The notes under the pieces: generated by a model
The model's database searches: none
What the model was told of the DNA's origin: nothing
Seen by the model: the letters and a program-made list of their open reading frames with translations, nothing else
DNA from: Macrostomum lignano
Taxonomy: Eukaryota
NCBI GenBank assembly: GCA_002269645.1
Contig: NIVC01000236.1
Location: 124,001 to 188,000, forward strand
Length of the DNA: 64,000 nt
Direction: 5' to 3'
Made by a program: the position numbers and the translations under genes
Shown here: piece after piece, positions 18,871 to 57,100 of the stretch
How the letters are laid out: each line of letters opens with the position of its first letter
Position numbering within the stretch: the first letter of the stretch is position 1

Positions 18871-19177
18871 GCTGCACATCGCTGACAACTAATTAGGAGC
18901 CCTAAGAGCTATGAGCATCCGTCTCGAACTGGCTACAGTTCAACCAAAGTAATTAACACTAACTGTGAGAATCCGGCTGGAAACCTTTTAAATATTTGTT
19001 TTATTGTATATTTTAGTTAACACAAGATTAGTGTAGCCATGAGACAGCAGGTGGCAAAGCAGTGTTGAAAAAATAAACTGTTGCTTGTTGCATCTGTCAT
19101 ACTGAATGAAGCCTGCAGTTCGTTAGTAGCTAATTGGACTGGACATCCGGTTCAGCAGTGCCCCACCCTTCTGCACC

Positions 19178-20145
19178 CTACTTCCGCCGTCTGTGCGACA
19201 GCACGCCCGCTCCGACGCGGCGGCAGTGGGCGGTGAACTCCTCCGGGGTGATGAACATCGGTGGGCAGGCGGCCCGGGTGCAGGCGGCGCTGCGGTCCGG
19301 CAGGCAGAAGCAGCGGTTGCAGCCGTCAAAGAAGGCCAGTTCGGCGGTGCGCCGGCCCCTGCACAGGCTGTCGGCGTCCAGGCAGGTCGTGTAGAAGCGC
19401 GACCGGTCCTTCTTCTCCTGGAAGCGGCGCTGCGCCTCCCGGCAGTAGAGAGCGGCGGCCTCGTTGTCGGGCTCCGGCTGCGGGCACTCGCGGCTGTCGG
19501 CCACGCGGGCCAGGCCGTCCGACACGCAGGTGACGTTCCGACAGCCGTCGTTGTACTGGAAGCCCGGCAGGAACTCCTCGCAGATGCGGCTGTGCCGCAG
19601 CGCCGGGCACTCGAACTCGTCCTCCTCGAGCGCGCCGGCTCGCGGCTCCTCCGACTGCTGCTTTCCGAGCCCTCCGACTCCAACGCCAATGCCACGAAGC
19701 GGCAGTACGGGCCGGTCGGGTCGGTCACCGGGCATTCCATGCGGGTCCTGGCGTGGCCGCCGGCCGCCAGACAGCGGACCCGGTTGCAGCCGTCGCTGAA
19801 GGCGAAGCCGGCGCCGCGGCGGGTACAGACGGAGTCGGCATCGATGTTGTAGCAAGTGAAGGGGCCGAGGCGGCTCCAGACGGCGCGGGAGAGGCTCTCG
19901 CAGAGGTTCCGCTCGCCCCGGCTGCTGGGCTCCGGGCAGGCCAGGAGGGTGGTGCTCGCCAGACCGCCCTCGTTGCAGGTGACGGTGTTGCAGCCATCGT
20001 TGTAGCTGAAGACGGACTCCGCGGCGTTGCAGACGAGTCCGGGATCGAGGTCCGGACAGCGCAGGGCTGGCTCATCCTGCTCAGCCTGACTGCTCGAAAC
20101 GGCAGTGCACAGCAGGCCCACCGTGATGAGGAAGAGAAGCTGCAT
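19178..20145 (-). CDS. Secreted Cys-rich protein with 4 pacifastin-like modules (paralog 1); one-base frameshift near 19662-19664
   Basis: Signal peptide MQLLFLITVGLLCTAVSSS. Modules CNTVTC..TTLLACP and CNRVRC..RTRMECP lie in one frame; CRNVTC..ADSRECP and the canonical DGCNRCFC..ACTRAACP lie in the -1 frame, ending at the stop at 19178. No intron is evident. Confidence 0.8.
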
Positions 20146-21282
20146 AGTTTTCGTTTATCCCAGTAGTCTCTTAGAAAAGCTGAATTGATATTTTGCAGAG
20201 GAAAAAGCATCAGCTTTTCAAGTCTTTTATGCCAACGAAGCGGACCGTTCGAAGAGTAAAATGGCAGTTTGAACTTCCGTTTTCTGACATTTAGCATTTC
20301 AAAGCTGATTGCTGATAATTGCCGACATAATTGGCAGTGCGAACCGGTTGCTGGGCGAACCTTTCTACCCTTTCAAGCCCCGCCAGCTCAGGCTGAACTG
20401 GCACTGACGGGGCTCCTGACTCATCAATTCTCCAGTTTTGGTGGTCAGCTGCCGCTGCATTGGCCAGATCCGCAGACTGACCGATGGCCGCGCAGCTCAC
20501 AAATGCCCAGCCCAGTGAGAAAGCGCCAACTCGGGCAACAGGCCCAGTTTCGTGTTGACTGTGCGAAATGTTTTATTCTATTTCATTCAGCGCAAATAAA
20601 GCGGTTGATGCCGAGGTCAAAACGATTGCGGCCAGGCCCTGGCTTAGCGACAAACGCGGTTGGTCCCTTTGTCAGCCCCGCCCCCGGTCTGCCCAGCTCT
20701 GCAATCAAGCGCTGGGCCAGAGCCCGGACCGCAAGGAAATACTGAGCTACAAGTCCTGGCCTAAAAACGCGATGGGATGACGTGTCGCATGTACACAGGG
20801 ATAGCGGCATTGGGAATAATCAACAAATTGGAAAATAAGATTACGTATTGATCAAGTCTACACCAGCATTATCGAGGTTCTATCGGTAATGAAATCGGGG
20901 TTAATGAGAGGGAAAGAGATGCATCAACAGAGATCGGAGGCCGCATGCAGAATGTATAAAGCGAGTACTAGCAAAGTAAGTAACGCGGAGTTTTTAAGAA
21001 ATGACGCCCCCCGCAGCGCTTGCACGAGAAAAGTTTACAAGTTTTACTTCTACAGCCCATCACAAGGTCAGCGAGACGCTTCCAGCCACCGGCCAACCCC
21101 CCAAAAATCATTGTCATTTGCCAAGCCGCGAGCGCAACTGAAACCTTTCCCAGTCACCCGTGAAAATTCTAAAAACAACAGCAAATCTTTGTGGAAACGC
21201 CTCGAGTCTCGTATAACATTGATGTGCGGCTTCGCTGATGGTTGGTCAAGGCACAGGTACGTGAACGAAATCGGCAGGGTCT

Positions 21283-22410
21283 CTAGTTGATGATGCCGGC
21301 CTTGCGCCGCACGCACTCTGCCCTGAACTCCTCCTCAGTGCTGAAGTAGGGCTGACAAGCCCGCCGGGTGCAGCCTGCCCGATTGACGCCCATGCAGAAG
21401 CAATAGTTGCAGCCGTCGAAGAACGATTTCCGCTCCCCGGGCTGCTTGCAGACGTCCGCAGCCGTCAGGCAGCTCGTGCGCCGCTTTGACTCGCGGCGCT
21501 TCGCCTCCATGGCCGTCTTGGCGTCGCTGCACCTGCGGGCGGCCTCCGCCTCGCTGCCCACCCGACAGAGGCGGGTGGTGCTGACACCACGGCCCGGCGA
21601 GGAGCAGTGCACTTCGTTGCATCCGTCGTTGTAGCGAAAGCCGTTCATCTCATTCGTGCAGATTCGCGACATGGCCAGCTCCGGACAGTCGAGGTCCTGG
21701 TTGCCCTCAGGAGCAGTTCGGCGGGCTTTGCTGACCACCCACTGGCAGAGGGCGCTCTCGGAACTGGCTGGCGGGCAGCCCATGAGCGTGCTGGTCCACA
21801 TGCCGCTCTCTCCGCACTCGATCGTGTTGCAGCCGTCGCTGAATCGGTACCCGATGCCCTCCATCCGGCAGACCTCCGTCTTGTTGATCCCCGAGCAGGT
21901 CCGCGGCTCCATCCGTTCGACCAGGCGCTCCATGCGCCGCTCGCACCTGGCGATCTGGGTAGGGTCTCCCGGCGACGGGCAGAACATCAACGTGGACGTG
22001 CCGCTGCCGTTGCCGTCGCAGACCACCGGGTTGCAGCCGTCGCTGTAAGTGAAGCCGGCACCGGCGGTGGCGCAGACGGCCTGCATGGACAGCGCCGGGC
22101 AGGTCACCCTGTCCGCATCGTCCAGTCGCAGCTGTATGTTCTCACGGATCGTCTGGCAGCGCTGTCGCTCCTCGGCTGTGGCGGCCGGCGGGCAGGCCAT
22201 CAGCGTGGAGACCAGCGAGCCGCTACCGTCGCAGGTCACCGTGTTGCAGCCGTCATTGAAGCTGAAATCGGCTGGCGCGAGCTTGCAGATCGACTGCTGC
22301 CAGCTGTAGCCGCAGCCGATGCCGTCGGACGAGTCTTCCTGGGATTTGGCGATCAGCGGAGCCGCTGTGGCCAAGAATAGGGCAATGAGCAGTCGGCAGG
22401 GATGCTGCAT
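21283..22410 (-). CDS. Secreted Cys-rich protein with 5 pacifastin-like modules (paralog 2), 375 aa, single exon
   Basis: Intact ORF with signal peptide MQHPCRLLIALFLATAAPLIAKS. Four DGCNx(V/I)xC..STxxxC modules precede a canonical DGCNYCFC..GCTRRAC module. Confidence 0.88.
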   Translation of the reverse strand: MQHPCRLLIALFLATAAPLIAKSQEDSSDGIGCGYSWQQSICKLAPADFSFNDGCNTVTCDGSGSLVSTLMACPPAATAEERQRCQTIRENIQLRLDDADRVTCPALSMQAVCATAGAGFTYSDGCNPVVCDGNGSGTSTLMFCPSPGDPTQIARCERRMERLVERMEPRTCSGINKTEVCRMEGIGYRFSDGCNTIECGESGMWTSTLMGCPPASSESALCQWVVSKARRTAPEGNQDLDCPELAMSRICTNEMNGFRYNDGCNEVHCSSPGRGVSTTRLCRVGSEAEAARRCSDAKTAMEAKRRESKRRTSCLTAADVCKQPGERKSFFDGCNYCFCMGVNRAGCTRRACQPYFSTEEEFRAECVRRKAGIIN

Positions 22411-27455: not shown

Positions 27456-30400
27456 TCAGAGCTCGCAGACGACGCTGCCCTCGGCATCGTCCTCCACCGA
27501 GTCCTCAATAAATGCTCGATTCGTCGCGCCCTCCTCGATGACCACGGCGATCGCCGTATCGTCGCAGAATGACAGCACCTTCTTCTTGGCGTTGGTGGAC
27601 CCGTTGGTGCCGGCGCTGCGGCTGAGGATCGACTTCCGCGCCGCGGTGCCGTTGCTGCGCTGCGCCGGTCCCAGCGCCGACATCTCCAGAGACTCGCTGG
27701 ACATAAAGATGCGAAACGGCGCCGCCTCGGAGCCGCTGCCGGTCAGCCGCGCTTTCTGCAGGCTGCGCGGCAGCAGCTTCTGCGCCTCCGTGGCGGCCGG
27801 CCGCGTTGATGGCAGCGGCGGCGTCGGCGGCCGGACCTCGTCGACGACTGTGACAGTGACGCGATCTGGCGAGGCCGCCGCCGCCGCCGCCGCCGATTCG
27901 TCGGAGTCTCTGGCAGCGGCGTGCAGGCGATAGCGGCGGCTGCCCAGGGCGGGGGCGGGTGGCGGCGAGCGGGCCGTGCCTCGGAGGCGCTGCGCCCCCC
28001 AGGACGGGTTCGCCTCCTCGTCGGAGCCCGCGTCGGCATCCGCGTCGCCATCCGCTTCGACGTCAGACGGGATCAGCGCGTCCCCAGCCTCCAAGAGCAT
28101 GGAATCCTCAGCCTCATCGCTGACGCTCGAGATGCAGTAGGTGGTAACGAATTTGCCGTCCTGTGGGTGGGGAGGGGGGCAGCTCGGTGAGCCTGCGGTG
28201 TCCCCACTGTGACGTCACGCCATTTGCCACCTGTTTTATAATTCTTGTTGTCTGTCTTCTCATCTAATCTTTTCTTAATTGATGACGATTGCGAATCCGA
28301 CTTTTTCTCGCGAATTTCACGTTTCTGGAATTCGCCTCGCTAAGCCCAGCTCCTCCACCACGCCATTGTTCGGATAAAAGTCCTCTCTCTCCCCCCCCTC
28401 TCTCCCTCTCTCCCTCTCTCCCTGCGCACTGCCATGCGCATTTTTTTCATAATGGAGTGGGCGCCCCACTAGGGACTGAATTTTATAATCCGGAGTCTGG
28501 CCAGCCATGCCAACCCCAGCCTGTGCTGCATCTGTCGGGGCCAAAATTACCCCAAATTAATTTGCAGGTCTAATTACATATCTCTGAGACTCGCTGACGT
28601 GAAATTCGATTACAGCCGGCCGCCCCTCCCGCCATTCTGCTCCGGCAATCGATCAGGAGCTGCTGCCGGGCCTGCCGGACTCAAATATTGACACCGCAGC
28701 GCCCGCCACCAACTCAAGTGAGGGCTGGGGACGGGCCGCAGTGCAGTGAAACAAAAGGCGAGCCCGCCTGGGAGCATTGAGGGATTCTAAAATCGATAGA
28801 TGCTTATTTGAAGGATAAGGCAGCCCTCTAATTATAGTCTTACTGGAAGCATTGCCCAGAAATTTTCGACAATTTAAAGATGACCATCTTTTCCCTAAAT
28901 AGGATTTTATCCAAGTAAAGTAGGGAAATTACCAGCCTACTCACAGGTGCAACTCTGAGCTGGCCTCACCTGCCCAACCGTCAATTGCGCATTCTGCAAG
29001 CCTAATTAATCACTGGGTAGAACAATTCTGCTCTTTGGAAGTTGAGCATTTTGCTCTGAAGACAGTTCCGTCATTATCCTGATTGATGGGGGGAGCTGGC
29101 TTTGAAGTGGACTCGGTAGAGCTATTAATAAAAACTCAGGCGGATGCCTGCTGCTTCAAGCCACATTAGAAACATAGCAGGTGTCAGCACCGGCCACCAA
29201 TGCCTCAGCGACCTCGAATTTGCACTCACCGAAGCCGGGCAGAGTCGCTTCTCAAAGTGGAACTTTTGCTGCTCCTTTTTCTTTTTCTTTTTCTTTTTCT
29301 TTTTCTTTTTCTTCCTGTTGCTGCGTTTTTCGCCGGCTGCCTCCAAGCCCGGCGGTGGCGAGGTGCCCGAAGCTGCCGCTGCCGCCGTTGCCGCCGCCGT
29401 GGCTGCCGCATTCGCAGCCGCCGCAGCGGTTGCCGCCGCTGCCGCCGCCACCTTCGCCGCTGCGGTGGCGGACTTTGGCTCCGGCTGTGGAATCGGGGGC
29501 TGAGCTTCTGCCTGATCCGCCGTGGCACTCTCGGCGGCTTCCCCGTCGGCTCCGTTGCCCATTTCCTGCGCCGCCCCCTCAGCTGCCTCCATCGCCGCCT
29601 CCACCTTCGCAGCCTCGTCGGTTGGCTGCTCTGGCTCTGATGGCGCTGCAGTCTCCGGCTCTTCGTTCTCCTCAGTTTCGCCCGCGAGGGCCCGCCGCAC
29701 CGTCTCGGACGCGTGCACCTGGTGCTTCTCGGCGCTCAGCGCCAGCTGCAGGGCCACATGGAGCGCGCCGCCGCCAGCGAAGAGCGCCGGGACGCCGGAA
29801 GTGATGACGCCGATGGACACTGGGCCGCAGTGCAGCCCTGCACAGGCGGCCATCGGTGGTGACGCTACACCGCCGCCATTGCCGCAGTCGGCGTCGTCAT
29901 TGACATGGACTCCGCCGCATCGCACTAGGCGGATTAGGTGCTCAGCCAGGCGCAGCAGATCGCGGACGCTGCGTCGAGAGGACTTTCGCCGCAGGCCGCA
30001 TAGGAACAGGAAGAGGTCGCCGAACGCGTGGCGCATGTGGACGTCCCTGTAGCTGGCGGCGATGCTGTTGAATACGTGGTAGTGGGCGTTGGAGACGGCG
30101 TTCACCTCAAAGGGCCGTTTGACGTCGCTAAGGCAGGCCAGGCCATCCAGGCGCACGAAGAGCACCCCGGCCAGCCGCTTGTACTCTGGCTGGAACGGCT
30201 GGTCGTTGAGCAATCGGCTGGCGTAGAACTCGGGCAGGTTGGAGCGGATCATGGCCTGGTAGGAGTCTCGCTGCTCCTCCATGGCCGAGTTTAATGCCAG
30301 CATCTCGTTCTCCAGCAGCAGGTGCTCGGACTCCAGGCTGTCAAACATGCTCTGCATCATGTTCTTGCGTCTGGGGAAGCACTTCTTGACCAGCTTGGTG

Positions 30401-33400
30401 AGGTTCTCGGCGCTGGGCCGGACCCTGGGATCGTCGCTCCAGGAGGTTTCCAGCACCTGGCGGAAGGTGATGGGGATGTCCTGAAGCTGGTCAGGCCGCA
30501 GCGAGTTCTTCACAATGGCCGTGAGCAGGTCCCGGGCGTTGCTCAGGTCCTCCCTGTAGCTGGCGAAGGGAATGCTCCGGGTGAAGATCTCGTAGAAGAT
30601 CACAGCGCAGGAGTAAATGTCGGAGCTCTGGTCCGGCGGCCACTGCAGCTCGGAGCGGAGGATCTCGGGTGCAACATAGATGTCGAAGTCCAGGACCTGC
30701 TGCTCGCTGGGATACTCGCCCAGTATGGCGTCGCGGACGTACTGGATGGCCGGCCGGGCGTCTTTGACGGCCCGGGTGGTGGTTGAATAGTACATGAGGT
30801 ACTCCCAGTCCGCTAGCTTCACCGTCCACTTGCTGTCCATGAGGCAGGCGCTGGTCCGCAGCATGCCGTGCACGATGCCCTGGCTGTGCAGGTAGCTGAC
30901 AGCCTGGCAGATGTCCATCACTATGGAGCCTTTGACCGCGGGCGCCAGATCCAGCTTGGGGTTGTGCACAACCTTGCTGAGCGGGCCGCGCTCGCAGTAC
31001 TCTGACACAACAAAGAAGTCCCGCTCGACCTGGGTCAGGCCGTGGAACGCTGCCACGTTGTTGTGGTGGACGCGGTCCATCATCCACTGCAGCAGCTTCT
31101 TAGTGGAGATGTCGAGCCTCTCTTGCGATCGCTGCGTCTGCAGCAGTCGCACGCCGACGCTGGCCTCCCGGAACTTGCCCGGCCACTGCAGCACCGTGTC
31201 CGCGTCGTAATCCTCCTCGCTCTCCGCTTCATCCTCCGTCATCTGCGTGCCGACGGAGATCGTGTCGGAATCGTCCATGCGGAAGCTGCGCATTGATCGG
31301 TTGCGGCCGCGGCTGCGCGGAGCGAAGAACATGATCTCCTCGATCGGCACCAGCCACAGGTCCTGCGGAGGGGGAGGGGGAGGAGGGGGAGAGTTGCTGT
31401 CTGGCACCTGCGCGACTTTTTGATGCAGAAGCAAGTATCAACTGCCTTTGGGGCGTGCCCCACCTAACCAGCGGCTCATATGTTATACAAACTACTTTCA
31501 CTCTGCGTAAAGAGCCCAGCCCAAACCTCCTTGGTCTCTCCTGCTCCCTTGCTGTTGAGCTGTGAGCTGCTTTGCTGCCTGAAGGCTTGTCTAAAAACTA
31601 ACGGATTAACTCTCAGTGCCAGTCAAGAAAACCTGGATGGAAAATGAATGTAAAAATACAGTGTGTTGCTGAAGCTTCAGAACTGGCTCACCTGGTTGAG
31701 CAGCTTCCACTGCACGTAGTTCTGCCTGGCAATGTACGCCCCGAGGCCGCCGGCCACCAGCAGCCCGACGCCAACGGAGGCGAGCGTCGGCGCCATCCAG
31801 GACGAGTTCCGGCTCTCCGCTTCCGTCTGCTCGCGGCGCCGCTTCTCCAGCCAGAGCTCGCGCAGGAGCCGCCCACCGCAAGCGGCCTTGTCGAGCACCT
31901 GCGTCCGGACCTTCTGGTGGACAGCGTTGCTAAGCGGCACGAAATTGTTGGCGCGGATAATGCTGGCCGGCTCCGGGTCCGTGTAGAACCAGTTCAGGAA
32001 GCCATAGAACTCGGTGGCTTCATCGCACCTGGAGTTCGGGCGGAGTCCGGCTAGTGCTGAGTGCCCTATCTATTTAGTATCTTTCGGCTGTCTGAATTTT
32101 TGTTTTATAGCCCTCTCACATTAACCAGTCCTCTCTTGTCCACTCTACAGTCCCCTCTTGTCTACTCTACAGTCCACTCTATAGTCCTCTCTTGTCCACT
32201 CTACAGTCCTCTCTTGTCCACTCTACAGTCCACTCTACAGACCTCTCTTGTCCACTCTACAGTACTCTCTTGTCCACTCTACAGTCTTCTCTTGTCCTCT
32301 GGACAGTCCTCTCTTGTCCTCTCTACAGTCCTCTCTTGTCCACTCTACAGTCCTCTCTTGTCCACTCTACAGTCCACTCTACAGTCCTCTCTTGTCCACT
32401 CTACAGTCCTCTCTTGTCCACTCTACAGTCCTCTCTTGTCCACTCTACAGTCCTCTCTTGTCCACTCTACAGTCCTCTCTTGTCCACTCTACAGTCCACT
32501 CTACAGTCCTCTCTTGTCCACTCTACAGTCCTCTCTTGTCCACTCTACAGTCCACTCTACAGTCCTCTCTTGTCCACTCTACAGTCCTCTCTTGTCCACT
32601 CTACAGTCCACTCTACAGTACTCTCTTGTCCACTCTACAGTCCTTTCTTGTCCACTCTACAGTCCTCTCTTGTCCACTCTACAGTCCTCTCTTGTCCACT
32701 CTACAGTCCTTTCTTGTCCACTCTACTGTCCTCTCTTTGCCCCATCTACACGCATGTCGCTCTTGTGTCCTTTCTATATGCGAAACATGAAAAGCCTTGG
32801 CCTGCAATCAATTTAAATAATTTGTGCATATTTTATTGCTTTTAGCCTCGAAGCACTGCAATTATGAAAATTAAGCGTCGGGCTGTCCAATAGAACCAAT
32901 CCACGACATTAGAATGAAAGAATCAGCAGAGACTGCTTTTCCATTGTTATCAGACCTCACTCGCACAAAGGGCTGCTGAGTGAGGTCTGTTTGGTTAGTC
33001 AGTTTTAAGGTTCAGTTTTAAGAGGTTATCGCCCCGTGCAAATGCTGCAGCCGTCGACAGCTACATAACCCCACAGTGGATATGCAACGATTGAGAGGGA
33101 CTGGCCTTCATAAGCACACAGCATCATGTCCAATGTAGAGGCTTTAGTTCACATACGATCCCCATTGCGTCTGCTTATCCTCTGGGGCTGAATGAGACTT
33201 CTCAATGATTCTACTCTCATTGCCGGCCCAGTAGTCCTTGTTCTACTCTCATTGCCGGTCCAGTAGTCCTTTTTCTACTCTCATTGCCGGCCCAGTAGTC
33301 CTTGTTCTACTCTCATTGCCGGTCCAGTAGTCCTTGTTCTACTCTCATTGCCGGCCCAGTAGTCCTTGTTCTACTCTCATTGCCGGTCCAGTAGTCCTTG

Positions 33401-36400
33401 TTCTACTCTCATTGCCGGCCCAGTAGTCCTTGTTCTACTCTCATTGCCGGTCCAGTAGTCCTTGTTCTACTCTCATTGCCGGTCCAGTAGTCCTTGTTCT
33501 ACTCTCATTGCCGGTCCAGTAGTCCTTGTTCTACTCATTGCCTGTACAATAGTCCTTATTCTACTCATTGCCTGTACAATCGTCCTTATTCTACTCATTG
33601 CCTGTACAATCGTCCTTGTTCTACTCTCATTGACTGTACAATAGTCCTTATTCTACTCATTGCCTGTACAATCGTCCTTGTTCTACTCTCATTGACTGTA
33701 CAATAGTCCTTATTCTACTCATTGCCTGTACAATCATCCTTGTTCTACTCTCATTGACTGTACAATAGTCCTTATTCTACTCGTTACATGTGCAATAGTC
33801 CTAATTCTACTCATTGCCTGTACAATCGTGCTTGTTCTACTCTCATTGACTGTACAATAGTCCTTGTTCTACTCATTACATGTACAATAGTCCTTATTCT
33901 ACTCATTACATGTACAATAGTCCTAATTCTACTCATTGCCTGTACAATAGTCCTAATTCTACTCATTGCCTGTACAATCGTGCTTGTTCTACTCTCATTG
34001 ACTGTACAATAGTCCTTGTTCTACTCATTACATGTACAATAGTCCTAATTCTACTCATTACATGTACAATAGTCCTAATTCTACTCATTACATGTACAAT
34101 AGTCCTAATTCTACTCATTGCCTGTACAATAGTCCTAATTCTACTCATTGCCTGTACAATAGTCCTAATTCTACTCATTGCCTGTACAATAGTCCTTGCT
34201 GTTATCTAGGAAACAGACTTCCTGCTAGTATTTTCTAGGAAAAAACCCTGTAGCTGTGTGAACCCAGATCCTCTTTAAGCTTTGCTGCCTTTAGCTCTAA
34301 TCGACAAACAACTTAGGCTGCAGGAAACAATAGTGTTTATATAAAACAAGAGAAACCGTCCCATAAGACTCACCTCGCAGTCATGTTCATCTTGATGATG
34401 AAGTAGGTGTAGGTGGCGATTGGGTAGGCGTCCGGGTTCTGGGCGTCAATGAGGTGTCCAGTTAGCCGGGAGTCCATTGTGTTAGCGTAGAAGTCCATGG
34501 CCGCCTGCACGGAGGCCGGTTGCGAGGCGTCCACGAAGCTTCCGTTGGCGTTCTCAATCAGCGCGAGGCTCACGAGGCTCTCATCGTTCAGTCTGAGATC
34601 CGAGGCCGATATGTAGGCGATGGAGTTTCGCAGGCTGCTGAGCAGGGCGGTGAGCCCATCGGTACCCTGGGCGAAGAACTCAACAACTGAATTGTTCCAG
34701 TCCGGGTGTCTCCAGGTGACTTTGTTGAGCTCGCGCTCGAACTCGCCGTACTTGGCCTTCCACTCGGCTGAGAAGGAGCTCAGAGCTTGGGTGAAGACTG
34801 CGGTGGAGCCCGACTTGTCCATGCGAGCCATGGGCCGGACGGGGTTGTGGGGCAGACTCGAGTTCGGGTTCGCGTTAACAATGCCCGGGCTGTCCCAGTG
34901 CGAGGTCTTCCCCATGTAGATGTCGACCAGAGTCTGGCGGGTCAGGCGCAGCCGTGTTGCACCGAAGGACGGCGGGTGATAGGCCACCGCCACGGCGCTG
35001 TGGGAGTTCGTTGGCTTTCATTTAGCTTCTCAGCACCTCGAGGCCTCTCAACTGGCTATGTTCGGGTAAGCCTCACAAGGCTACTCAAGCCTCCCTGACA
35101 CACTCCAGGGCTACTCAAGCCCCCTGACACACTCCAGGGCTACTCAAGCGTCCCTGACACACTCCAGGGCTACTCAAGCCCCCTGACACACTCCAGGGCT
35201 ACTCAAGCGTCCCTGACACACTCCAGGGCTACTCAAGCGTCCCTGACACACTCCAGGGCTACTCAAGCCCCCTGACACACTCCAGGGCTACTCAAGCCTG
35301 TGTCACACCATATCTGTATCACACCATGCCTGTATCACACCATGCCTGCATCACACCATATCTGTATCACACCATGTCTGTATCACACCATGCCTGCATC
35401 ACGCCATGCCTGCATCACGCCATGCCTGTATCACGCCATGCCTGTATCACGCCATGCCTGTATCACGCCATGCCTGTATCACGCCATGCCTGTATCACGC
35501 CATGCCTGCATCACGCCATGTCTGTCTCCAGAGCGGCTTGTGAATGCAAAAGCAGACCTAGCGGTCGGTCCTTGCAACCAGTCCCGTGCATTGCAGTAGT
35601 CACGGGAGTTTCTCGAGAGTCTGTAGGCACGGATAAGCTGAGATCTCAGCAAACTGTAAACTCGTGCATAATTCAGCAAAAGTACACAATGAAAGCACAC
35701 ACACACACACACTCGCAAAAGGCATATCTGAGCAATTCATGCATCTGTAAATATTAGCATGGATCTTCTACACTAAGGCAGGCTATCGCTCTGACTGGTC
35801 TCGTACTTTAAATAGCGGCGATCGCTGGTCTCTACACTTGTCCTGCCGATGCTGGATGGCAATTTTTATTGTGAGGCTACTGTGAGGCGAGGGCAGGCCG
35901 GTTACTGCTGGCGGAATTAAACCCGTCACGGCCCATTAATTAATGAGTTGTTGCAGAGACTGGCGCGGCTGAGGGTGGCCATCAGGCCAGAGCTCAGGCA
36001 TACGGCCCAGCCTAATAGCGGCTCAGGGTTTCAGCTCAATTGGCTATTTGAACAGAGCTTACGGTGCCAAAGCTGGGGGCGGAGCGGAGGGCGGGAGGCG
36101 CTGTCATGAGCCAGCAGCCCCATGGCGGCGGAGCGGAGGGCGGGAGGCGCCGTCATGAGCCAGCAGCCCCATGGCGGCGGAGCGGAGGGCGGGAGGCACC
36201 GTCATGAGCCAGCAGCCCCATGGCGGCGGAGCGGAGGGCGGGAGGCGCCGTCATGAGCCAGCAGCCCCATGGCGGCGGAGCGGAGGGCGGGAGGCGCCGT
36301 CATGAGCCAGCAGCCCCATGGCGGCGGAGCGGAGGGCGGGAGGCGCCGTCATGAGCCAGCAGCCCCATGGCGGCGAAGCGGAGGGCGGGAGGCGCCGTCA

Positions 36401-39281
36401 TGAGCCAGCAGCCCCATGGCGGCGGAGCGGAGGGCGGGAGGCGCCGTCATGAGCCAGCAGGCCGTTGCTGAGGGCAAAACAATGAAGTGGAGAAAAAAGA
36501 CTCAGCAAGGTGGGCTGGAAAAAAACAAACTTTGTAGCAGCGGATCAGCGGCTAAGTTTCAATTAACAGAGTCCTCAGAGCTGCCGCTGACGTGGGAACT
36601 GCTGCATGGGCGGATCTCGACATACACAAGTTTCCTGTTTCGCTAAGAGTTAAAAAGTCAGCTCTGCTTTCTGTCAAAGTCTGATTCGCGATTCTGCCAA
36701 GCTTATTTCGGAAATCATTGTGAGCCGGTCGGGTGACAAATCTGTCCTAGTCTTAACTCTGACTTAGAGTGAGCGATGCGAGCTGTTTGATGAGCTGAGG
36801 GCTTTCATCTTTGTTGGAGTTCTCGAGCCCAACTGGCTTGCTTTGCCTGGCTATTCAATTACTGAACTGCCTGTCTGCCTACCTGCCTACCCACCTGCCT
36901 ACCCACCTGCCTACCCATCTGCCTACCCACCTATTCACCTGCCTACCCACCTGCCTACCCACCTGCCTACCCACCTGCCTACCCACCTGCCTACCCACCT
37001 GCCTACCTAACTACCTACCCACCTACCTACCTAACTACCTACCCACCTACCTACCCACCTACCTACCCACCTACCTACCCACCTACCTACCCACCTACCT
37101 ACCCACCTACCTACCCACCTACCTACCTACCCACCTACCTACCTACCCACCTACCTACCCACCTACCTACCCACCTACCTACCCACCTACCTACCCACCT
37201 ACCTACCTAACTACCTACCCACCTACCTACCTAACTACCTACCCACCTACCTAACTACCTACCCACCTACCAACCTACCTACCCACCTACCCACCCATCT
37301 ACCTACCCACCTATTTACGTGCCTACCTACCTACCTACCTACCTACCTACCTACCTATCTACCTACCGATCAACCTACCCAGTACCTACCCACCAATCTA
37401 CCCACCTAACTGCCTACCCACCAATTCACGCACCTACCCACCTATCTACCTATCCACTTACCCACGTACCTACCTAACTACCTACCTACCTACCCACCCA
37501 CATCTGACCTAAAAGTCACCAGTTCCTGCTTTCTTTATCAATCATATTCTCCACCCTTCATCGTTTTTCTGTCGTTATATAGATATTAATTTCCAGCCTC
37601 AGGACCACCAGAGACGAGTCCTTTTTCTGGATCAAATCCAATTTTCTGAAAAACAACTACAAACGGAACTAAAAAGAGACAGGCGCCACCTCAAGCTAGC
37701 AGAGCCGAGAGCTCACCCGCGGAAAAGTATGCTCAAGAAAAAACAACATGGCTTGTGGCCTGTTTTCAGGCTGAGATGGAGCAGCCCGCCTCTCCCTTCT
37801 CATTCTTCAATGTTGCTTTTACGAGCTAAAAAGCAGCCTAAAATCCCGCGCTGCTACTTCCAGATCCCGGCATGAAAGCAGCACTTTTGCCTGCTTTGGG
37901 TCTTAGACCTGCCCCTTTTGTTTTTGCAGCCACAGCACAAAAGTCAAAGTGGATTGCTTGCTCTGACGGGCTGCACCGGCACAATGAGTCAGTTTTGTAT
38001 ACTTTTATGCTTTTTATACAATCCGACCAAACACTGACTCGCGAGCCTGCAGCAGGATAGAACTGACAGAAAAGAAATCTTCAACAATATCTGCAGATAA
38101 AAACTTGTCACAGATTCCAATGAACTCTATGCGATAGATGGATTAGATCTGTAGACTAACAACAACAAAATGCTCAGACCAGCAATCCATTCTACTCCAG
38201 TGCATGTAGGCTAGACTAGCAATCCATTCTACTCCATTGCATTTAGGCTAGACTAGCAATCCATTCTACTCCAGTGCATTTAGGCTAGACTAGCAATCCA
38301 TTCTACTCCAGTGCATGTAGGCTAGACTAGCAATCCATTCTACTCCATTGCATTTAGGCTAGACTAGCAATCCATTCTACTCCATTGCATTTAGGCTAGA
38401 CTAGCAATCCATTCTACTCCAGTGCATTTAGGCTAGACTAGCAATCCATTCTACTCCAGTGCATTTAGGTTAGACTAGCAATCCATTCTACTCCATTGCA
38501 TTTAGGCTAGACTAGCAATCCATTCTACTCCAGTGCATTTAGGCTAGACTAGCAATCCATTCTACTCCATTGCATTTAGGCTAGACTAGCAATCCATTCT
38601 ACTCCAGTGCATTTAGGCTAGACTAGCAATCCATTCTACTCCAGTGCATTTAGGCTATACTAGCAATCCATTCTACTCCAGTGCATTTAGGCTAGACTAG
38701 CAATCCATTCTACTCCAGTGCATTTAGGCTAGACTAGCAATCCATTCTACTCCATTGCATTTAAGCTAGACTAGCAATCCATTCTACTCCAGTAGTGCTT
38801 GTAGGCTAGACTAGCAATCCATTCTACTCCAGTAGTGCTTGTAGGCTAGACTAGCAATCCATTCTACTCCAGTAGTGCTTGTTGGCTAGACTAGCAATCC
38901 CTCGCAGAGTCGCAGAGACAAGGTGGAGATCCCGCCAGGAGCTCACCCCGCCAGCGTGGGGAACATCTGGCTCTCCGGGTAGCTGCTGTACTCCGAGTCC
39001 TTCATGATGGAGTCGCTGCCGGCAAACAGCTGGTAGTCGGGGTCGGCCTGGTTGTTGTAGCCCCGCTGGAAATTGAGCCGGCCGGTGCCGCTGCCCACGC
39101 CCGAGTAAACGATGCTAACGTCCGCCCAGGCGCTGCGGTGCGCACTGTAGCGGTCGCAGACGGCGATGTACACATTCTGCGGGAAGGTCGCCCCGCTGCC
39201 GCGCACAGTGATGGCTTCGGCCGAGCCGGCGGCTATCACGGTTACCATGCCAACCATGTTCAACAGCACAGCGCCTGTCAT
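27456..39281 (-). CDS. Single-pass receptor of about 1377 aa: signal peptide - PstS-type phosphate-binding ectodomain - TM - kinase-homology domain - coiled coil - degenerate guanylyl cyclase domain - low-complexity tail
   Basis: Phase-consistent exons 39281-38947, 34997-34374, 32028-31692, 31362-29230, 28160-27456 (4134 nt). PstS motifs: [50 protein letters not shown]: [23 protein letters not shown]: [42 protein letters not shown]. Cyclase-like: LFVRLDG, FGD, GLHCGPV, FEKR...TY. Confidence 0.88.
32125..32735. repeat. 22-bp minisatellite (with 11-bp half units) in receptor intron 2
   Basis: Tandem cactctacagtcctctcttgtc. Confidence 0.95.
33205..34200. repeat. 32-bp minisatellite grading into a related 30-bp unit (receptor intron 2)
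   Basis: tctactctcattgccggcccagtagtccttgt, then tctactcattgcctgtacaatagtccttat. Confidence 0.93.
35080..35520. repeat. Adjacent 29/30-bp and 16-bp minisatellites (receptor intron 1)
   Basis: ctactcaagcccctgacacactccaggg-type units to about 35298, then catgcctgtatcacgc units. Confidence 0.9.
36075..36460. repeat. 49-bp GC-rich minisatellite (receptor intron 1)
   Basis: catggcggcggagcggagggcgggaggcgccgtcatgagccagcagccc, period 49 (36121, 36170...). Confidence 0.95.
36865..37500. repeat. (CCTA/CCCA)-derived microsatellite (receptor intron 1)
   Basis: cctacccaccta-type repeats. Confidence 0.93.
38178..38900. repeat. 37-bp minisatellite (receptor intron 1)
   Basis: Tandem ctagactagcaatccattctactccagtgcatttagg. 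Confidence 0.95.
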
Positions 39282-39883
39282 GCTTGCTAAGAGTCGGCAG
39301 GGAGGTCAAAGCCCCCTCCTAGAGTCCCGAGTCCAGCGGTGGCTATGGAGGCTGCGCTAAAATTCTCTGGACTGCCTGCCGGATGCCGCATCCCGCCAGG
39401 ATTAAATTATACACAAAGTCGCCGCACCCCTGCCGTCTGCCTCCAGCCAGTGCGGCTCAGCTGAGGGTCGAGAGGGAACTGGTCACCCGCACCCAGCCAA
39501 TCAGCGCACGGCTCAGCAGGTACCGGCGATTCTTGGCCAGATGAGCTTCATCGGCTGCTAGTTCGAAGGCAAACAGGCAATTCATCACTAATTGACAACT
39601 GGCAGTCACCTCATTACTCACTGACAGACAACTGGCAGGTACTGATTATTCGCAAGGGACTTAGTCAGGCTAAAACGCCATTTTAAATCAATTTAAGACG
39701 CAGACAACAGCCGCAAATCGCGATTTTCGGGTAAGAGCAGGTCGGAGGATTTATTTGCTCTTGGTCAATTTGAGTTCCCGAGGATCACACAGCCCTCTGC
39801 TACAGATGAAAGCGGAATATCAGGATAAATATGAGCGCAGTGTTCATGGGAGAATGAGCTGGAGTCTGTCAGCCCTGAAGGGG

Positions 39884-47772
<7,889 letters not shown>

Positions 47773-51196: not shown

Positions 51197-54100
51197 TCAG
51201 CCCTGGCAGCTCAGACAGGCCTCCTTGTTCTCCAGCGAGCAGAGCATGTCCTTCTGGTTCTGCAGGCGGAGCTCCTGCATAGCGGCCTCCGCCTGCTTGG
51301 TGTCGCCAGCCGGTTCGGAGGCGTCGTTCTCCTTGCCCTTGACCCGAACCCTGGCCTTGTCCACGGTGAACTGGATTGGCTGGGCGGCCGGCCTGGTGCG
51401 CAGGTAGTACATGCCGGTCTTCAGGCCGCTGCGCCAGGCGAAGAAGTGCATGCTGGTGATCTTGGCAAAGTTGGGCTGGGCGATGTGCAGGTTCAGGCTC
51501 TGGCTCTGGTCAATGTAGGCGCCGCGGTCGGCGGCCATTTCCATGATGCGCTTCTGCGGGATCTCCCACACCGTCTTGTACAGGTCCTTCACCTCCTGCG
51601 GTATGCCATCGATGCTCTGGACGGAGCCCTGCGGAGTGACAATGGGTCAGCTGGGATAGAACATGTGCATAGAACATATAATACTTCGTATCTAATTGTC
51701 CTTTTCAGAGTCGAATTTCAGAATGGCCGCTCAAAGGCCAATGCGCCAACCAGGATGTCTCTAAATAGCTAATTATTGATGCATACGACTCACCTGGTTA
51801 GCCACGATTGCAGTCTTCAGATCGTCTGACCAGAGACCCAGCCTGGTGAGGTCGCGCAGCAGATGCGGATTAACCACCTGGAATTCGCCGGACAGAACCC
51901 GCCTGCTGTACACATTGCTAGTGTAGGCCTCAATGCTCTCATTGTTGCCGAGAATTTGAGCTGTGGAGGCGGTAGGCATCGGGGCCAGCAGGAGGCTATT
52001 GCGCAGGCCGTACTTGGCAATGTCCGCCCGCAGCTGAGTCCAGTTCAGGCCAATGTCCGGCCTGTCCGGCGTGGCCACGGACCACATGTCCGGCTGCAGG
52101 ATGCCCTTGCTGGCCGGGCTGCCCGGATGGGTCTCGTGCGGCCCGAACTTGCGGGCCTCCATGCAGCTGGCCTCCAGCGCTGAATAATAGATGGTGGCGA
52201 AGATGTCCTTGTTGAGCTGGGCGGCCTCCGGGGACTCCCAGGCGTAGCGCATCAGCTGGAAGGCGTCCGCCAGACCCTGCACGCCGATGCCGATGGGCCG
52301 GTGGCGCATGTTGGAGCGCTCGGCCTCCGGCACCGGGTAGAAGTTGATGTCGATGATGCGGTTCAGGTTGCGGACAACAACGTGGGTCACGTGACGCAGC
52401 ATGGCGAAGTCGAACTGTCCGGGCTCCTTCACGAACCTGGCGGATGGAGAGAGTGGATTATCAGTCAATACGGTCCCGAGATGGTACCCAGGCGGTTAGG
52501 CCAAGAAGCGTCACTTGCGTCACCCCAAAATCGTTTCAGAGTCAGGTAAAATAGGAGAGAAATGACTCTAAACGACTATAAAACGGCGAGATGTCATGGC
52601 ACAAGTCCTCAAAAAGTCGTCCAAGAATCACTTTGAAGCGTTTGGTTTATTGTCTGCGGCTCTGGGGCCGTAGAGTCGAATTTGAGGCGTGCTAGAGTCG
52701 CTGTGTAGTGTGTCATCGAGTTTCTTGAAGCCGTTTGCGTTGCTTAGGCCGGGAATTAGTCACGTCTCCAGCGCTTCAGTGGCGTTCTTCAATCGCTAAA
52801 AGTCGCAGAAGCGCTCTAGCGTCAGTGTAGAATCGTTTGTGCGTCACTTCTGAGACGCTCTGGATGGAGTGTAGCTTATTGAACTGCACTCAAGTAACCT
52901 GTTGAGTTAAACACCAACGCAACGATTCTTAGACGACTCTTTCACGATTCTACAACTCGCGTGACGCACCTGCGACGTAACAGTCGCCTCTCCGTCGTAT
53001 TAGACGAGTTTGAGTCGTTAAAAAGCCACAAGAGTTGCCGTAGAGTCACTAGAGCCACTAGAGAGTTGTTTTCAACAGCTTTTAGGCAACTCTTGTCACG
53101 GTACCGTTTTTAACGTGAGCGCGGTCACACCTCTAATAAGCAAAAAAACTCGCAGACGGAGCAAATTAAATTACAAACCATTTCTCACCTGTTCAGTGCT
53201 ACGCTGGCCAGATTGCACACTGCCACCTCATCTGGGCTGCTGTATTCGACAATCTCCGTGCACAGGTTTGAGCACTTGATGGTGCCAAGGTGCTGCTGGT
53301 TGCTCTTGGAGTTGCACGAGTCCTTGTACAGCATGTAGGGCGTGCCAGTCTCGATCTGGGCCTCGATAATTGCGTACCAGAGCTCCTGGGCGCGCACTGT
53401 CTTGCGCCCCTTGCCGGCCGATTCGTATGACTCGTACAGCTTGACGAAATCCGCGCCCCAGGCATCGGACAGGCCGGGACACTCGTGCGGGTCCATGAGG
53501 GTCCACTGGCCGTTGGACTCGACGCGCTGCATGAAGAGGTCCGGCACCCAGAGCGCGTAGAACAGGTCGCGGGCTCGATTCTCATCTTTGCCGGTGTTCT
53601 TGCGCAGGTCGAGGAATTCGAACACATCCGGGTGCCAAGGCTCCAGGTAGATGGCGAATGCACCGGGCCGCTTGTTGCCGCCCTGGTCAACATACCTGCC
53701 GATGGGGGGCGAGTGGCTTATGAGTTGGGTTAAATTCTGAGGATCCCTGCACACACTATCTCCTCTCTGAGGATCCCCTGCATACATTATCCCCTCCCTG
53801 AGGATCGCCTGCACATACTATCCCCTGCCTGAGGATCCCTTGCACACATTATCCACTCCCTGAGGATCCCCTGTACACATCATCTCCTCCCTGGGGATCC
53901 CCTGCATACATTATCCCCTGCCTGAGGGTATATAAAACCCCCTGCGAATATTATCCCGTGATCTGGGGATAGCATGATTAATCTTCAACTTTAGCAGTAA
54001 AGGGAAGTAAGAAACAAATAGATATTATAATTACCTGGCCGTATTGTTAAACACCCTCAGCAAGGGCACGATGCCATTCGAGGTGCCATTGGTGCCGGCA

Positions 54101-57100
54101 ATGTAGGAGCCGGTGCTGCGAATGCAGTGAATGTTGAGGCCGACTCCGCCAGCAGACTTGGAGATGAGGGCGCACTGCTTCAGAGTGTCGTAGATGCCCT
54201 CAATGCTGTCGTCCTTCATGGTGAGCAGGAAGCAGGAGCTCAGCTGCGGCTTCGGTGTGCCGGCATTAAACAGAGTAGGACTGGCGTGGGTGAACCACCT
54301 GTGCGACATGAGCTCGTAGGACTCGATGGCCGCCTCCACGTTGCCGCAGTGGATGCCGCAGGCCACGCGCATCAGCAGGTGCTGCGGCCGCTCGGCGACT
54401 CGCTTGTTAATCTTCAACAGGTAGGACCTCTCCAAGGTCTTGAAGCCGAAGTAGTTATAGTGCAGGTCGCGCTCAAAATCGATAGCGGAGTCAAGGCGCT
54501 CGCGATTGGCCAGCACGAAATCCAGGAAGTTGCGCGTCACCATAGGCGAGTGCAGGCCAGTCTTGGGATTCACGTACTCGTACAGGTCAGTCATCACCTC
54601 GGAGAACTTTGCCTTGGTGTCCTTGTGCAGGTTGGACACGGCAATGCGAGCGGCCAGAATGGCATAGTCCGGGTGCTTCGTTGTCATCGTGGCGGCCGTC
54701 TCAGCTGCCAGGTTGTCCAACTCGGAGGTTGTGACGCCCGGGTAAAGCCCGCTAATCACCTTGCGCGTAATCGCCGCCTGCGCATTGAAAGGCAGAGCCA
54801 AGATACTACAAGTGCTGAAGTACATATATGCTACTGACTACTAACTAGTAGGCAATGTGAAGGCACTTACCGGCTCAACATAGTCTTCATTCAAGCCGCT
54901 GCAGAGGCTCTGAATGCGTGCAGTAATTTTATCATAGTGCACTTTTTCACGCCTCTGATCTAAAAATTTTGGTGGGAATTGAAAATGCCATTTAGTTGGT
55001 GCAAACTTGAAATAACTAGGCCAGTTCATATAATTACCATTGAATTAAGAGCAGAGCCTAAATCGGGTACATAAATTATCAGAACTCTTAGTTTTATTAC
55101 ATGTATAAATCAATGTATTGACTGGTAGCAGTTTTGGGTTTCTAGCATTGTAAAAATGACTTAATTTCAAAGAAAAAATGTTGTTTCATTTATATTAGTC
55201 AAAAAGATTTTTTATTTCTATTATACTAACATTTTCACAAGATTGTATATTAAACCAAGTATTTAATGTCTATTCTAACAATATATACTCAAATATTCAA
55301 AAATCATATATCTCATTGCTAATACTAGGGAATTTAGTTAGATTTTTTAAGTTTTTTGTTTAATTTTAATTTTAATTTTGTTTAGTTTTAGTTAATTTAA
55401 TAGATCTCATTTACAAAATTAACACTAGTGTCGTGATCCTTTACTTTTGCACATTTTTATTTTTATAATTATTTTCTTGGAAATCTGCAGTTCAAATGGG
55501 TACATAATAATGTGGCTTGAAATATTTGTCTCTCATATATCAGTTAGGTGGGTAAACTTAATTAGTAGTCAATTAGTGATTGGTGGATATAATAGACTTA
55601 CAACTCAAAGCAGTCACACAACTAATATCATGGCTAGCTAGCTGTCTATCTGCACTTACAACCATTGTTTATTGTTGCTTTTCATCTATACAGCTCTTAT
55701 CAATATTAACAGTTTTATTAGTTAGCAGTTAACAATCTATTATCAATATCTCTATTGAATCTATAATAATATTCATCATTAGATTGAATAGAAGCTACAA
55801 TTTTTAAAAGAAAAAATTAAATATGAGAAAGTAAAAGATTGATAAGACACTTTACTTTAGAAAACTGGTCAATTAATAAAAGTTGGAAAACTTTGGTCTA
55901 ATTTTGGTATAGTGCAAAAAATTATAGTTTTGTCCAGATTAGAAATATAAGCCTAAAATTTTAAATAGAAACATAGTTAATTACTCAGCATATTTTTATA
56001 CAAAAATTTAAAATCTATATACAATAATTCTTATCACATGTTCAATAACTCTTACTAGATCATTGCTTATTTCTCAGAGTTCTAAGAGTGTTGTGAAGAA
56101 GGTCAGAAAGTCAGGAATTGGAATTTATGCAAAAAGGAGTACTAAGAATAAGTGCCATGACCTTCTAATCTTAGTAACACCCAGACTAGAAAAAAAGTAC
56201 ATATACCAATACCAGTAGGACCACTCAGGTCAAAATTATATACCAGATGCTACCAGAATGCTATTAAGAACACTACTAGAACCAGTGTTGGGTACTAGTC
56301 TATTAATAAGTGTTAACCCATTAATAAGCATTAAGACTTTAAGTGTTAAGATTTTTCTTTAAAATTATTGGACTGCCATTAAGATTTTTTGAACTAACAG
56401 ATTAAAAAAATTGCATTAATAATTTTGTGAGTTAATAACAAATTTATCATTAACATTAATGGCAATGTCAATGACCAAAGATGCAAAGAAAGAACAAAAA
56501 TTTAAGTCTGAAGAGAAGTTACAACCAGATATATTAAATGAATTTATTTAAATGCCCAATTAATCTCAATTAATCAAATTAGTCAATGATCATGCAAATT
56601 AACAATTTCTTATTATGAACTTTAATTATGAATTATGCTTGTAAAATATTGTGAACTTTATTGCTTGCGTGTGAGCATGGATTGCTTTGATTTACTTCTT
56701 CTTTAATCTTTCGTAACTTTCTGCTACACCTGCTAATGCTACAGAAACAACCTTTATATTTGTATTTTATTATTAACTAATTAGCTTTCAAGTTTCAAAT
56801 AAATAAGATACTTCTTTTACCATATGCTTACTTTTAGTAGTATTATAAATACAAGTTTTTAAAATTATTATTTATTACTTTTTAGCTTGTAGATCACTTA
56901 GACAACCTTTGTGTTTTGCTAAAAAGGTGGAAAAGCAAAGATAGTGCATTATGGAAGTCTGTTTAAAAAAAGTGCAAGATTTCTATATTTTTGTGTTAAC
57001 TTTAATGGATTAATGCTTATTAATGACTATTAGTTAACTTTCAGTTAACTTGACAAAATTAAGAGTTAATAAGTTAGGCCTAAGATTTTCTTGTTTTAAC

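Follow-up and report, generated by a model that had tools for sequence, protein, structure and literature searches.

The 64,000-nucleotide stretch analysed here, called the window below (Macrostomum lignano, NCBI GenBank assembly GCA_002269645.1, contig NIVC01000236.1, positions 124,001 to 188,000 of the forward strand), contains a minus-strand gene for a type I membrane protein whose ectodomain resembles PstS, the phosphate-binding protein of the bacterial PstSCAB importer. This PstS domain is not the free partner of a PstCAB importer: it lies in one coding sequence with a transmembrane (TM) helix and with intracellular domains of the kind found in receptor guanylyl cyclases (rGCs). We have next to no doubt that the ectodomain has a genuine PstS fold with an intact ligand pocket. 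All coordinates of the gene given below refer to the minus strand.

The receptor gene has five exons (39281-38947, 34997-34374, 32028-31692, 31362-29230 and 28160-27456), with GT-AG boundaries throughout, which join into an open coding sequence of 4134 nucleotides for a protein of 1377 amino acids. Its four exon junctions are all found in two public M. lignano models, the fragment A0A1I8GI17 and the longer A0A1I8HE86, and the former, a UniRef entry, is the best database match to the receptor (100% identical). Exon 1 (38947..39281; amino acids 1-112) encodes the signal peptide and the start of the PstS domain, including T32, F33, S64 and D90; it was defined from its open reading frame (ORF), a phase-2 GT donor and the uninterrupted coding sequence obtained on joining, and its junction with exon 2, QMFPTLAG/AVAVAY, is also present in A0A1I8HE86. 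Intron 1 (34998..38946), dense in minisatellites, interrupts the codon of Gly112 in phase 2. Exon 2 (34374..34997; amino acids 112-320) covers the central portion of the PstS domain, and the pocket motif of the C-lobe lies in it at 34828-34802. The C-terminal PstS helices, the stalk and the TM helix are encoded by exon 3 (31692..32028; amino acids 320-432), whose junctions NMTAR/CDEATEF and KLLNQ/DLWLVP match A0A1I8GI17; C321, the first full codon past the exon 2/3 junction, and C370, both in this exon, align with the cysteine pair of the closest bacterial PstS. Exon 4 (29230..31362; amino acids 433-1143) encodes the juxtamembrane segment, the kinase homology domain (KHD), the coiled-coil linker, the cyclase homology domain (CHD) and an acidic/Ala/Lys low-complexity insert. 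Exon 5 (27456..28160; amino acids 1144-1377, stop codon at 27458-27456) adds the last CHD strand, aligned with KGKVRTYWL of the natriuretic peptide receptor GC-A, and a low-complexity C-terminal tail; its junction CPAS/DGKFVTTY is again shared with A0A1I8HE86.

A preliminary description of this locus had assigned the ectodomain to the span 34374-39281, from two ORFs at 39281-38943 and 34993-34370. These ORFs are the exons on either side of the 3.9-kb intron. The span does carry exons 1 and 2 and all nine pocket residues, but not the whole PstS fold: about 3.9 kb of it is intron, and the last ~65 residues of the fold lie beyond it in exon 3 (32028-31692).

The encoded protein starts with a signal peptide (amino acids 1-23, cleavage predicted after AEA), followed by the PstS domain (~24-385) and a single TM helix (397-420; 31799-31728). 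The intracellular half consists of a KHD (~498-755; 31167-30394; Pfam PK_Tyr_Ser-Thr, 1.2e-25), a coiled-coil linker, a class III CHD (~830-993; 30171-29680; Pfam Guanylate_cyc, 26.9 bits for a cut-off of 21.9, 4.1e-6) and a low-complexity tail, the CHD being broken near its end by the long low-complexity insert. Pfam reports no ANF_receptor domain in the receptor, and the ectodomain is recognized as PBP_like_2. As judged from these domain matches, the receptor follows the plan of membrane guanylyl cyclases, but its ectodomain is a PstS domain where these usually have one of the ANF-receptor type.

The assignment of the ectodomain to PstS comes from several matches, well above what chance would give. 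The Pfam family PBP_like_2 (PF12849) is matched with 69.8 bits (cut-off 27, E=4e-19), and the NCBIfam model for PstS, TIGR00975, is covered over 311 of its 315 positions (1-311; E=3.8e-56). A HMMER comparison with Protein Data Bank (PDB) chains retrieved PstS from Yersinia (2z22, E=3e-23) and from Escherichia coli (1ixh, E=2e-21). The preliminary description had aligned four motifs by hand with nine ligand-binding residues of E. coli PstS. All four (GSGATFP, GVGSGT, FAGSD and ARMDKSGST) can be read from the minus strand where it had placed them, and the residue correspondence was reproduced both by the HMMER pairwise alignments to PDB chains and by a MAFFT L-INS-i alignment of 125 sequences comprising E. 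coli PstS (a reference identical to 1ixh_A), the M. lignano protein, three molluscan proteins, one from Euglena and 119 bacterial matches. T10 and F11 of E. coli PstS thus correspond to T32 (39188-39186) and F33 (39185-39183) within GSGATFP (39200-39180), S38 to S64 (39092-39090) in GVGSGT and D56 to D90 (39014-39012) in FAGSD. The remaining five lie in ARMDKSGST (34828-34802): R135 corresponds to R170 (34825-34823), D137 to D172 (34819-34817), S139 to S174 (34813-34811), G140 to G175 (34810-34808) and T141 to S176 (34807-34805). The conservative Thr-to-Ser replacement at position 141 is the sole change among the nine, as had been proposed. Pocket identity is thus eight of nine, for an overall identity of 27% to E. 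coli PstS, although this is a naive contrast since the pocket columns are the most conserved of the superfamily. The same alignment reveals a family-specific insert of about 20 residues (amino acids ~196-217) common to the M. lignano ectodomain and the molluscan ones.

We also compared the predicted fold with PstS structures, as the preliminary description had suggested. An AlphaFold2 model of amino acids 21-392, built from a 124-sequence alignment, has a mean pLDDT of 93.8 and a pTM of 0.91. In a Foldseek search of the PDB with this model, the top 49 matches are all phosphate-binding proteins; the two-lobe fold of type II periplasmic binding proteins (PBPs) superposes on solved PstS structures with E-values of ~1e-29 to 1e-31 and template modelling (TM) scores of 0.86-0.91. 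For phosphate-bound entries of E. coli PstS, the target-normalised TM score is 0.88-0.91, with a root-mean-square deviation of 2.5-2.9 Å. In the DSSP string of the model, the nine pocket residues fall at strand ends and helix N-termini: in model numbering, residues 12-13 precede helix 15-29, 44 begins helix 44-55, 70 follows strand 66-69, 150 ends strand 146-150 and 154-156 stand at the beginning of helix 155-167. This placement, which is that expected of a PstS protein, and the fold match suggest indirectly that the nine residues may line the cleft between the two lobes.

The M. lignano receptor is not isolated. An exhaustive HMMER profile search of 1.84 billion representatives (clusters at 50% identity) produced more than 100 clusters that couple a PstS region to a KHD and a cyclase region. 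A word-indexed search with a profile of four proteins gave back only those four, its index step missing most of the family. Full-length relatives with 31-33% identity are present in Haliotis asinina, H. cracherodii and the chiton Liolophura sinensis, and the same PstS-KHD-cyclase arrangement occurs in bivalves (Argopecten, Mercenaria, Mya, Dreissena and Sinanodonta), in gastropods (Bulinus, and Haliotis with two paralogues), in the nemertean Tubulanus, in the annelids Owenia and Helobdella, and in the nematode Trichinella pseudospiralis. These proteins are mislabelled in public databases as 'atrial natriuretic peptide receptor-like', 'retinal guanylyl cyclase 2-like' or 'gcy-29-like'. Both parts, PstS and rGC, are thus of known kinds, and their combination was already present in the databases under automatic labels. 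We found no description of a cyclase receptor with a PstS ectodomain in the full-text literature, although most subscription journals are outside the coverage of our search and this absence is not proof.

The exon structure of these genes speaks to their age. In Haliotis asinina, intron 1 has the position and phase of intron 1 in M. lignano: both are in phase 2 and interrupt the same Gly codon (MFPTLA[G]G in Haliotis, MFPTLA[G]A in M. lignano). Many gene calls in the family start at profile position ~110-116, which suggests that intron 1 is widespread and that the first exon is often missed by annotation. The last Haliotis intron and intron 4 of M. lignano, both in phase 0 and one codon apart in the MAFFT alignment, are possibly the same, and were not used as evidence. 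Since orthologues are spread across phyla and Haliotis shares the position and phase of intron 1, the PstS domain has been carried by a gene with introns in the animal lineage at least from the last ancestor shared by flatworms and molluscs onwards. Outside animals, its nearest relatives are PstS proteins from metagenome-assembled genomes (MAGs) of Anaerolineales/Chloroflexota, at 32-35% identity, hardly nearer than those of other clades; a bacterial donor could not be pinned down with our neighbour-joining tree, which is inadequate at this depth. In a few unicellular eukaryotes, namely the ichthyosporean Chromosphaera perkinsii, Fabomonas tropica, Entosiphon sulcatum and Euglena gracilis, we observed receptors with two to four tandem PstS domains, several of them with complete pockets; in Euglena and Fabomonas, a class III cyclase domain follows downstream. 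PstS-cyclase receptors may thus be older than animals, and the occurrence of PstS-repeat receptors in an ichthyosporean, an ancyromonad and euglenids might even mean that they arose early in eukaryotes rather than being received late from bacteria.

Within the animal family, the pocket has been kept to an uneven degree. The flatworm, abalone and chiton ectodomains are only 33-36% identical, with 26% of columns invariant, yet seven of the nine pocket positions are invariant among the three and the other two show Ser/Thr swaps (hypergeometric P=0.0015). We then scored 75 family representatives with a motif for the C-lobe pocket, R-[DE]-x-S-G-[ST]: it is intact in 56 and damaged in 19, each of the latter having lost at least one pocket residue. 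The N-lobe equivalents of S38 and D56 are intact in 15 of 16 representatives. Members with a lost pocket still have the PstS-derived ectodomain; in Trichinella, for example, the residues aligned with RDxSGT are YGISRA, and in Helobdella they are RFPAGS. Because the pocket can disappear in this way without loss of the domain, its retention in the other members is informative.

The intracellular half of the M. lignano protein is degenerate. Aligned to GC-A/NPR1 (9bcv), the seven catalytic positions of the CHD, canonically DEDRCNR (two metal-binding Asp, the Glu and Cys that determine specificity, an Arg, and the transition-state Asn and Arg), read RHDAFHQ. The guanine-specifying Glu and the transition-state Asn and Arg are absent from M. 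lignano as well as from the Haliotis (DNDKVDS) and Liolophura (EADRCKQ) proteins; M. lignano has in addition lost the first metal-binding Asp and the specificity Cys, so that the second metal-binding Asp alone is kept from the set. Its KHD is that of a pseudokinase, as in other rGCs, with Arg for the beta3 Lys, HG for HRD and DWE for DFG. From these residues, the receptor probably cannot make cGMP as a homodimer. Eight other members of the family pair an intact pocket motif with a complete DEDRCNR set, among them a full-length protein of Owenia fusiformis (A0A8J1UIS0; pocket SFSDRDSSGT). We also noted that 'Guanylate cyclase 2G' of Trichinella pseudospiralis, which has lost the pocket, has a fully canonical catalytic set. 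At the level of sequence, therefore, the family as a whole looks like a set of guanylyl cyclases gated by a ligand, with the M. lignano protein as a catalytically dead derivative.

The genes around the receptor are eukaryotic. On the same strand and immediately upstream lies a GRAM-domain gene (39765-43467), and further upstream are exons for the large subunit of ribonucleotide reductase (51773-54825, minus strand), which we identified by eye from conserved motifs and which are followed by an A+T-rich stretch (54-60 kb, GC fraction 0.31-0.40). On the other side, at 19123-22410 (minus strand), two adjoining ORFs of 340 and 375 amino acids encode proteins with repeated Cys-rich Pacifastin_I protease-inhibitor domains (Pfam PF05375, 9.6e-21 and 3e-4), each with a signal-peptide-like N-terminus. 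The introns of the receptor gene are full of minisatellites (32126-32737, 33209-34198, 35079-35525, 36074-36460, 36867-37501 and 38176-38900, with units of 22, 30, 16, 49, 12 and 37 bp and up to 32 copies), which yield long spurious ORFs on both strands.

In the public model A0A1I8HE86 (1867 amino acids), the GRAM gene runs on into the PstS receptor, the two being joined at an AG acceptor just past the ATG at 39281 (ATGACAG/GCGCTG). This is probably a merged gene model; alternatively, the acceptor may be a spliced-leader trans-splice site, in which case translation of the receptor would start at M9 or M12. A0A1I8HE86 also differs from the window in the region of the S38 motif, where 19 residues (amino acids 62-80, ~39098-39042) are replaced by 16. 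These 16 are what the window encodes in a different frame once 8 nucleotides and 1 nucleotide have been deleted. A second frame-shift-like change is seen in its CHD, opposite amino acids 885-900 of the window protein. These differences reflect either assembly errors or a decaying duplicate in a partly duplicated genome.

How could such a receptor work? Luecke and Quiocho are said to have shown in 1990 that Asp56 of E. coli PstS serves as a proton acceptor and thereby excludes sulfate. By analogy, orthophosphate would bind between the two lobes of the ectodomain and induce a Venus-flytrap closure, with D90 accepting the proton that sets HPO4/H2PO4 apart from sulfate. The closed state of the lobes would be communicated across the membrane by the TM helix and would act on the KHD/CHD dimer, in the manner of natriuretic-peptide receptors and of the ion-sensing GCY cyclases of Caenorhabditis elegans. 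In catalytically complete relatives, such as that of Owenia fusiformis, the likely output would be a change in cGMP synthesis. As the M. lignano protein has lost most of the CHD catalytic set and has a pseudokinase KHD, it would most likely bind phosphate as a regulatory subunit or within a heterodimer, or signal as a scaffold, rather than work as a self-sufficient cyclase. The signalling route itself is speculative.

We consider it likely that the ectodomain binds inorganic phosphate. The preliminary description had argued that retention of the Asp56 equivalent reflects selection for phosphate binding rather than a purely structural role, and this argument gains support from the age of the domain, the invariance of seven pocket positions, the pocket losses in 19 of the 75 representatives, and the eight members that combine the motif with a complete cyclase set. 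For the protein as a whole, the reading that we favour with moderate confidence is that of a phosphate-binding receptor with a PstS ectodomain, serving in M. lignano as a regulatory, heterodimeric or scaffold subunit. A broader scenario, in which protostomes possess dedicated extracellular phosphate receptors that signal through cGMP and in which the dead members are phosphate-binding subunits heterodimerising with active paralogues, is conceivable and we propose it only tentatively.

Several observations weigh against the reading that we favour. The TIGR00975 score, 190.5 bits, is slightly under the equivalog cut-off of 205 bits (the Haliotis orthologue, with 208.3, is slightly over). T141 is present in all 119 of the closest bacterial PstS proteins, which makes the Ser of M. 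lignano unusual for a transporter PstS; within the receptor family, Ser occupies this position in 18 of the 75 representatives (M. lignano and 17 others). Beside the pocket, K173 stands in place of G138. Lys at this position (33 of the 75 family members, 2 of the 119 bacterial proteins) is a metazoan hallmark, and it could change pocket access or specificity. In the intracellular half, a dead CHD with a large low-complexity insert leaves the signalling output not evident, and we identified no catalytically competent partner in M. lignano; among the sequence representatives searched, identity to the query does not exceed 35%. Lastly, in the second public model, A0A1I8HE86 (~98% identical), two frame shifts that compensate each other remove the S38 motif; if these are real, one of the duplicates is decaying.

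Could the pocket be intact and the ligand nonetheless be something other than free orthophosphate, that is, another tetrahedral oxyanion (arsenate, vanadate or a sulfate-like ion) or a phosphorylated small molecule or peptide that docks its phosphate in the conserved site? The metazoan changes near the site would fit such a shift, namely G138 to Lys, T141 to Ser and, in the molluscan members, T10 to Ser, and so would the family-specific insert that M. lignano shares with molluscs. On the other hand, every hydrogen-bonding residue is kept, with T141 as Ser and including the equivalent of the sulfate-excluding Asp56, and the fold matches closed, phosphate-bound PstS strongly. The ligand of PstS is, moreover, wholly buried between the lobes, with no space for a bigger substituent unless the cleft has been remodelled. 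We regard a different ligand as unlikely. That the ectodomain binds nothing is in our view quite improbable: the pocket would then be maintained for fold stability, or be lost slowly, in an orphan receptor, a decoy or a structural, dimerising partner. The degenerate catalytic residues of the M. lignano protein and its closest molluscan relatives, the pseudokinase, the interrupted CHD and the disrupted S38 motif in the near-identical public model would all agree with such a protein. However, ectodomains that have diverged to 33-36% identity would then have kept seven pocket positions invariant, with two conservative swaps at the others, and the paralogues that lose the pocket retain the signal of the fold, which implies that the pocket residues are dispensable for folding.

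The PstS-like part might also be an artefact or a newcomer: contaminating bacterial DNA, a gene acquired horizontally in very recent times, or a piece of a pseudogene joined by mistake to a neighbouring receptor gene. The nearest non-animal relatives are indeed bacterial, the MAG proteins of Anaerolineales/Chloroflexota mentioned above, and the public M. lignano models at this locus are messy, one being a fragment (A0A1I8GI17) and the other chimeric (A0A1I8HE86). We give this explanation almost no credence, as the PstS domain is cut by two spliceosomal GT-AG introns and continues in frame into the exons for the TM helix, the KHD and the CHD, the best bacterial match is only 34-35% identical, the flanking genes are eukaryotic, and in Haliotis the fusion recurs together with its intron. 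We rejected contamination and a prokaryotic origin of the gene because it has introns, sits among eukaryotic genes and is fused in frame; the orthologues and the intron shared with Haliotis led us to reject a recent transfer specific to Macrostomum.

How animals sense extracellular phosphate is still debated. Mammalian candidates include PiT1/PiT2, CaSR and FGFR1, none of which has, to our knowledge, a defined phosphate-recognition pocket comparable to that of PstS. In the family described here, the best-understood phosphate-binding site is joined in one polypeptide to a metazoan second-messenger module, an arrangement conserved across several phyla. The M. lignano receptor and its mollusc, annelid and nemertean relatives are thus candidate extracellular phosphate sensors of animals and, if this is true, would provide the first metazoan phosphate sensor that is defined at the level of residues. 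The family contains its own natural controls, with decayed-pocket paralogues and with cyclase domains that are either active or dead, and M. lignano is a tractable species in which RNA interference, in situ hybridisation and transgenesis are established.

Compared with PstS of E. coli and Yersinia (1ixh, 2z22), which serves the PstSCAB importer, the receptor shares the fold, a full-length domain match and eight of nine pocket residues. It differs by its low overall identity (27%), the T141S and G138K changes, the insert at amino acids ~196-217 and N-glycosylation sequons, and above all by its context: the domain is not a soluble protein or lipoprotein that works with an ABC transporter but forms the extracellular part of a single-pass receptor in a eukaryote, and the animal gene for it contains introns. 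With NPR1 (9bcv) and other membrane guanylyl cyclases such as GC-C (8fx4), the common features are the type I topology and the same order of KHD, coiled-coil linker and class III CHD. The match between the Haliotis orthologue and NPR1 begins at the TM helix and extends through the cyclase domain (1e-63); the CHD of M. lignano aligns with 3e-7. Here the difference lies in the ectodomain, a type II PBP of the PstS kind instead of the type I PBP known as ANF_receptor, as well as in the RHDAFHQ set and the Lys-to-Arg change at beta3 of the KHD in M. lignano. The family is thus a clean case of a receptor scaffold on which a type II PBP has taken the place of a type I PBP.

We know of no defined anion pocket in the ectodomains of the C. 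elegans GCY proteins, which are of the ANF-receptor type; in the present family, the ligand site can be predicted by residue from PstS. The likeness to these worm receptors is functional: they are rGCs that sense small inorganic solutes through their ectodomain, and some form heterodimers. Their ectodomains sense inorganic ions directly, GCY-14 responding to Na+, Li+ and alkaline pH and GCY-1, -4, -6 and -22 acting in salt taste, and obligate rGC heterodimers such as ODR-1/DAF-11 are known, in which one subunit is not self-sufficient (PMC5225109). In the receptor adenylate cyclases of trypanosomatids, a single TM helix connects a Venus-flytrap (VFT) ectodomain with a class III cyclase (PMC6027212). 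Kinetoplastid and euglenid receptor cyclases resemble the animal receptors in combining one or more PBP/VFT domains with a single TM helix and a class III cyclase; unlike them, they have no KHD and carry two VFT domains. The Euglena gracilis protein (EG_transcript_3874) has two PBP_like_2 domains, the first with a full pocket, followed by a TM helix and the start of a cyclase domain, and it is placed outside the animal clade in our neighbour-joining tree.

Finally, the DING proteins, including the so-called human phosphate-binding protein (2v3q, 4f1v), are also members of the PstS superfamily reported from eukaryotic samples, and they use the same phosphate-binding residues. They match the M. 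lignano ectodomain much more weakly (E ~1e-6 over the N-lobe only, TM score 0.63-0.69). DING proteins are of ~370 amino acids with four extra protrusions and are not known to have intron-bearing eukaryotic genes, whereas the PstS domain of M. lignano is unambiguously encoded by an animal genome.

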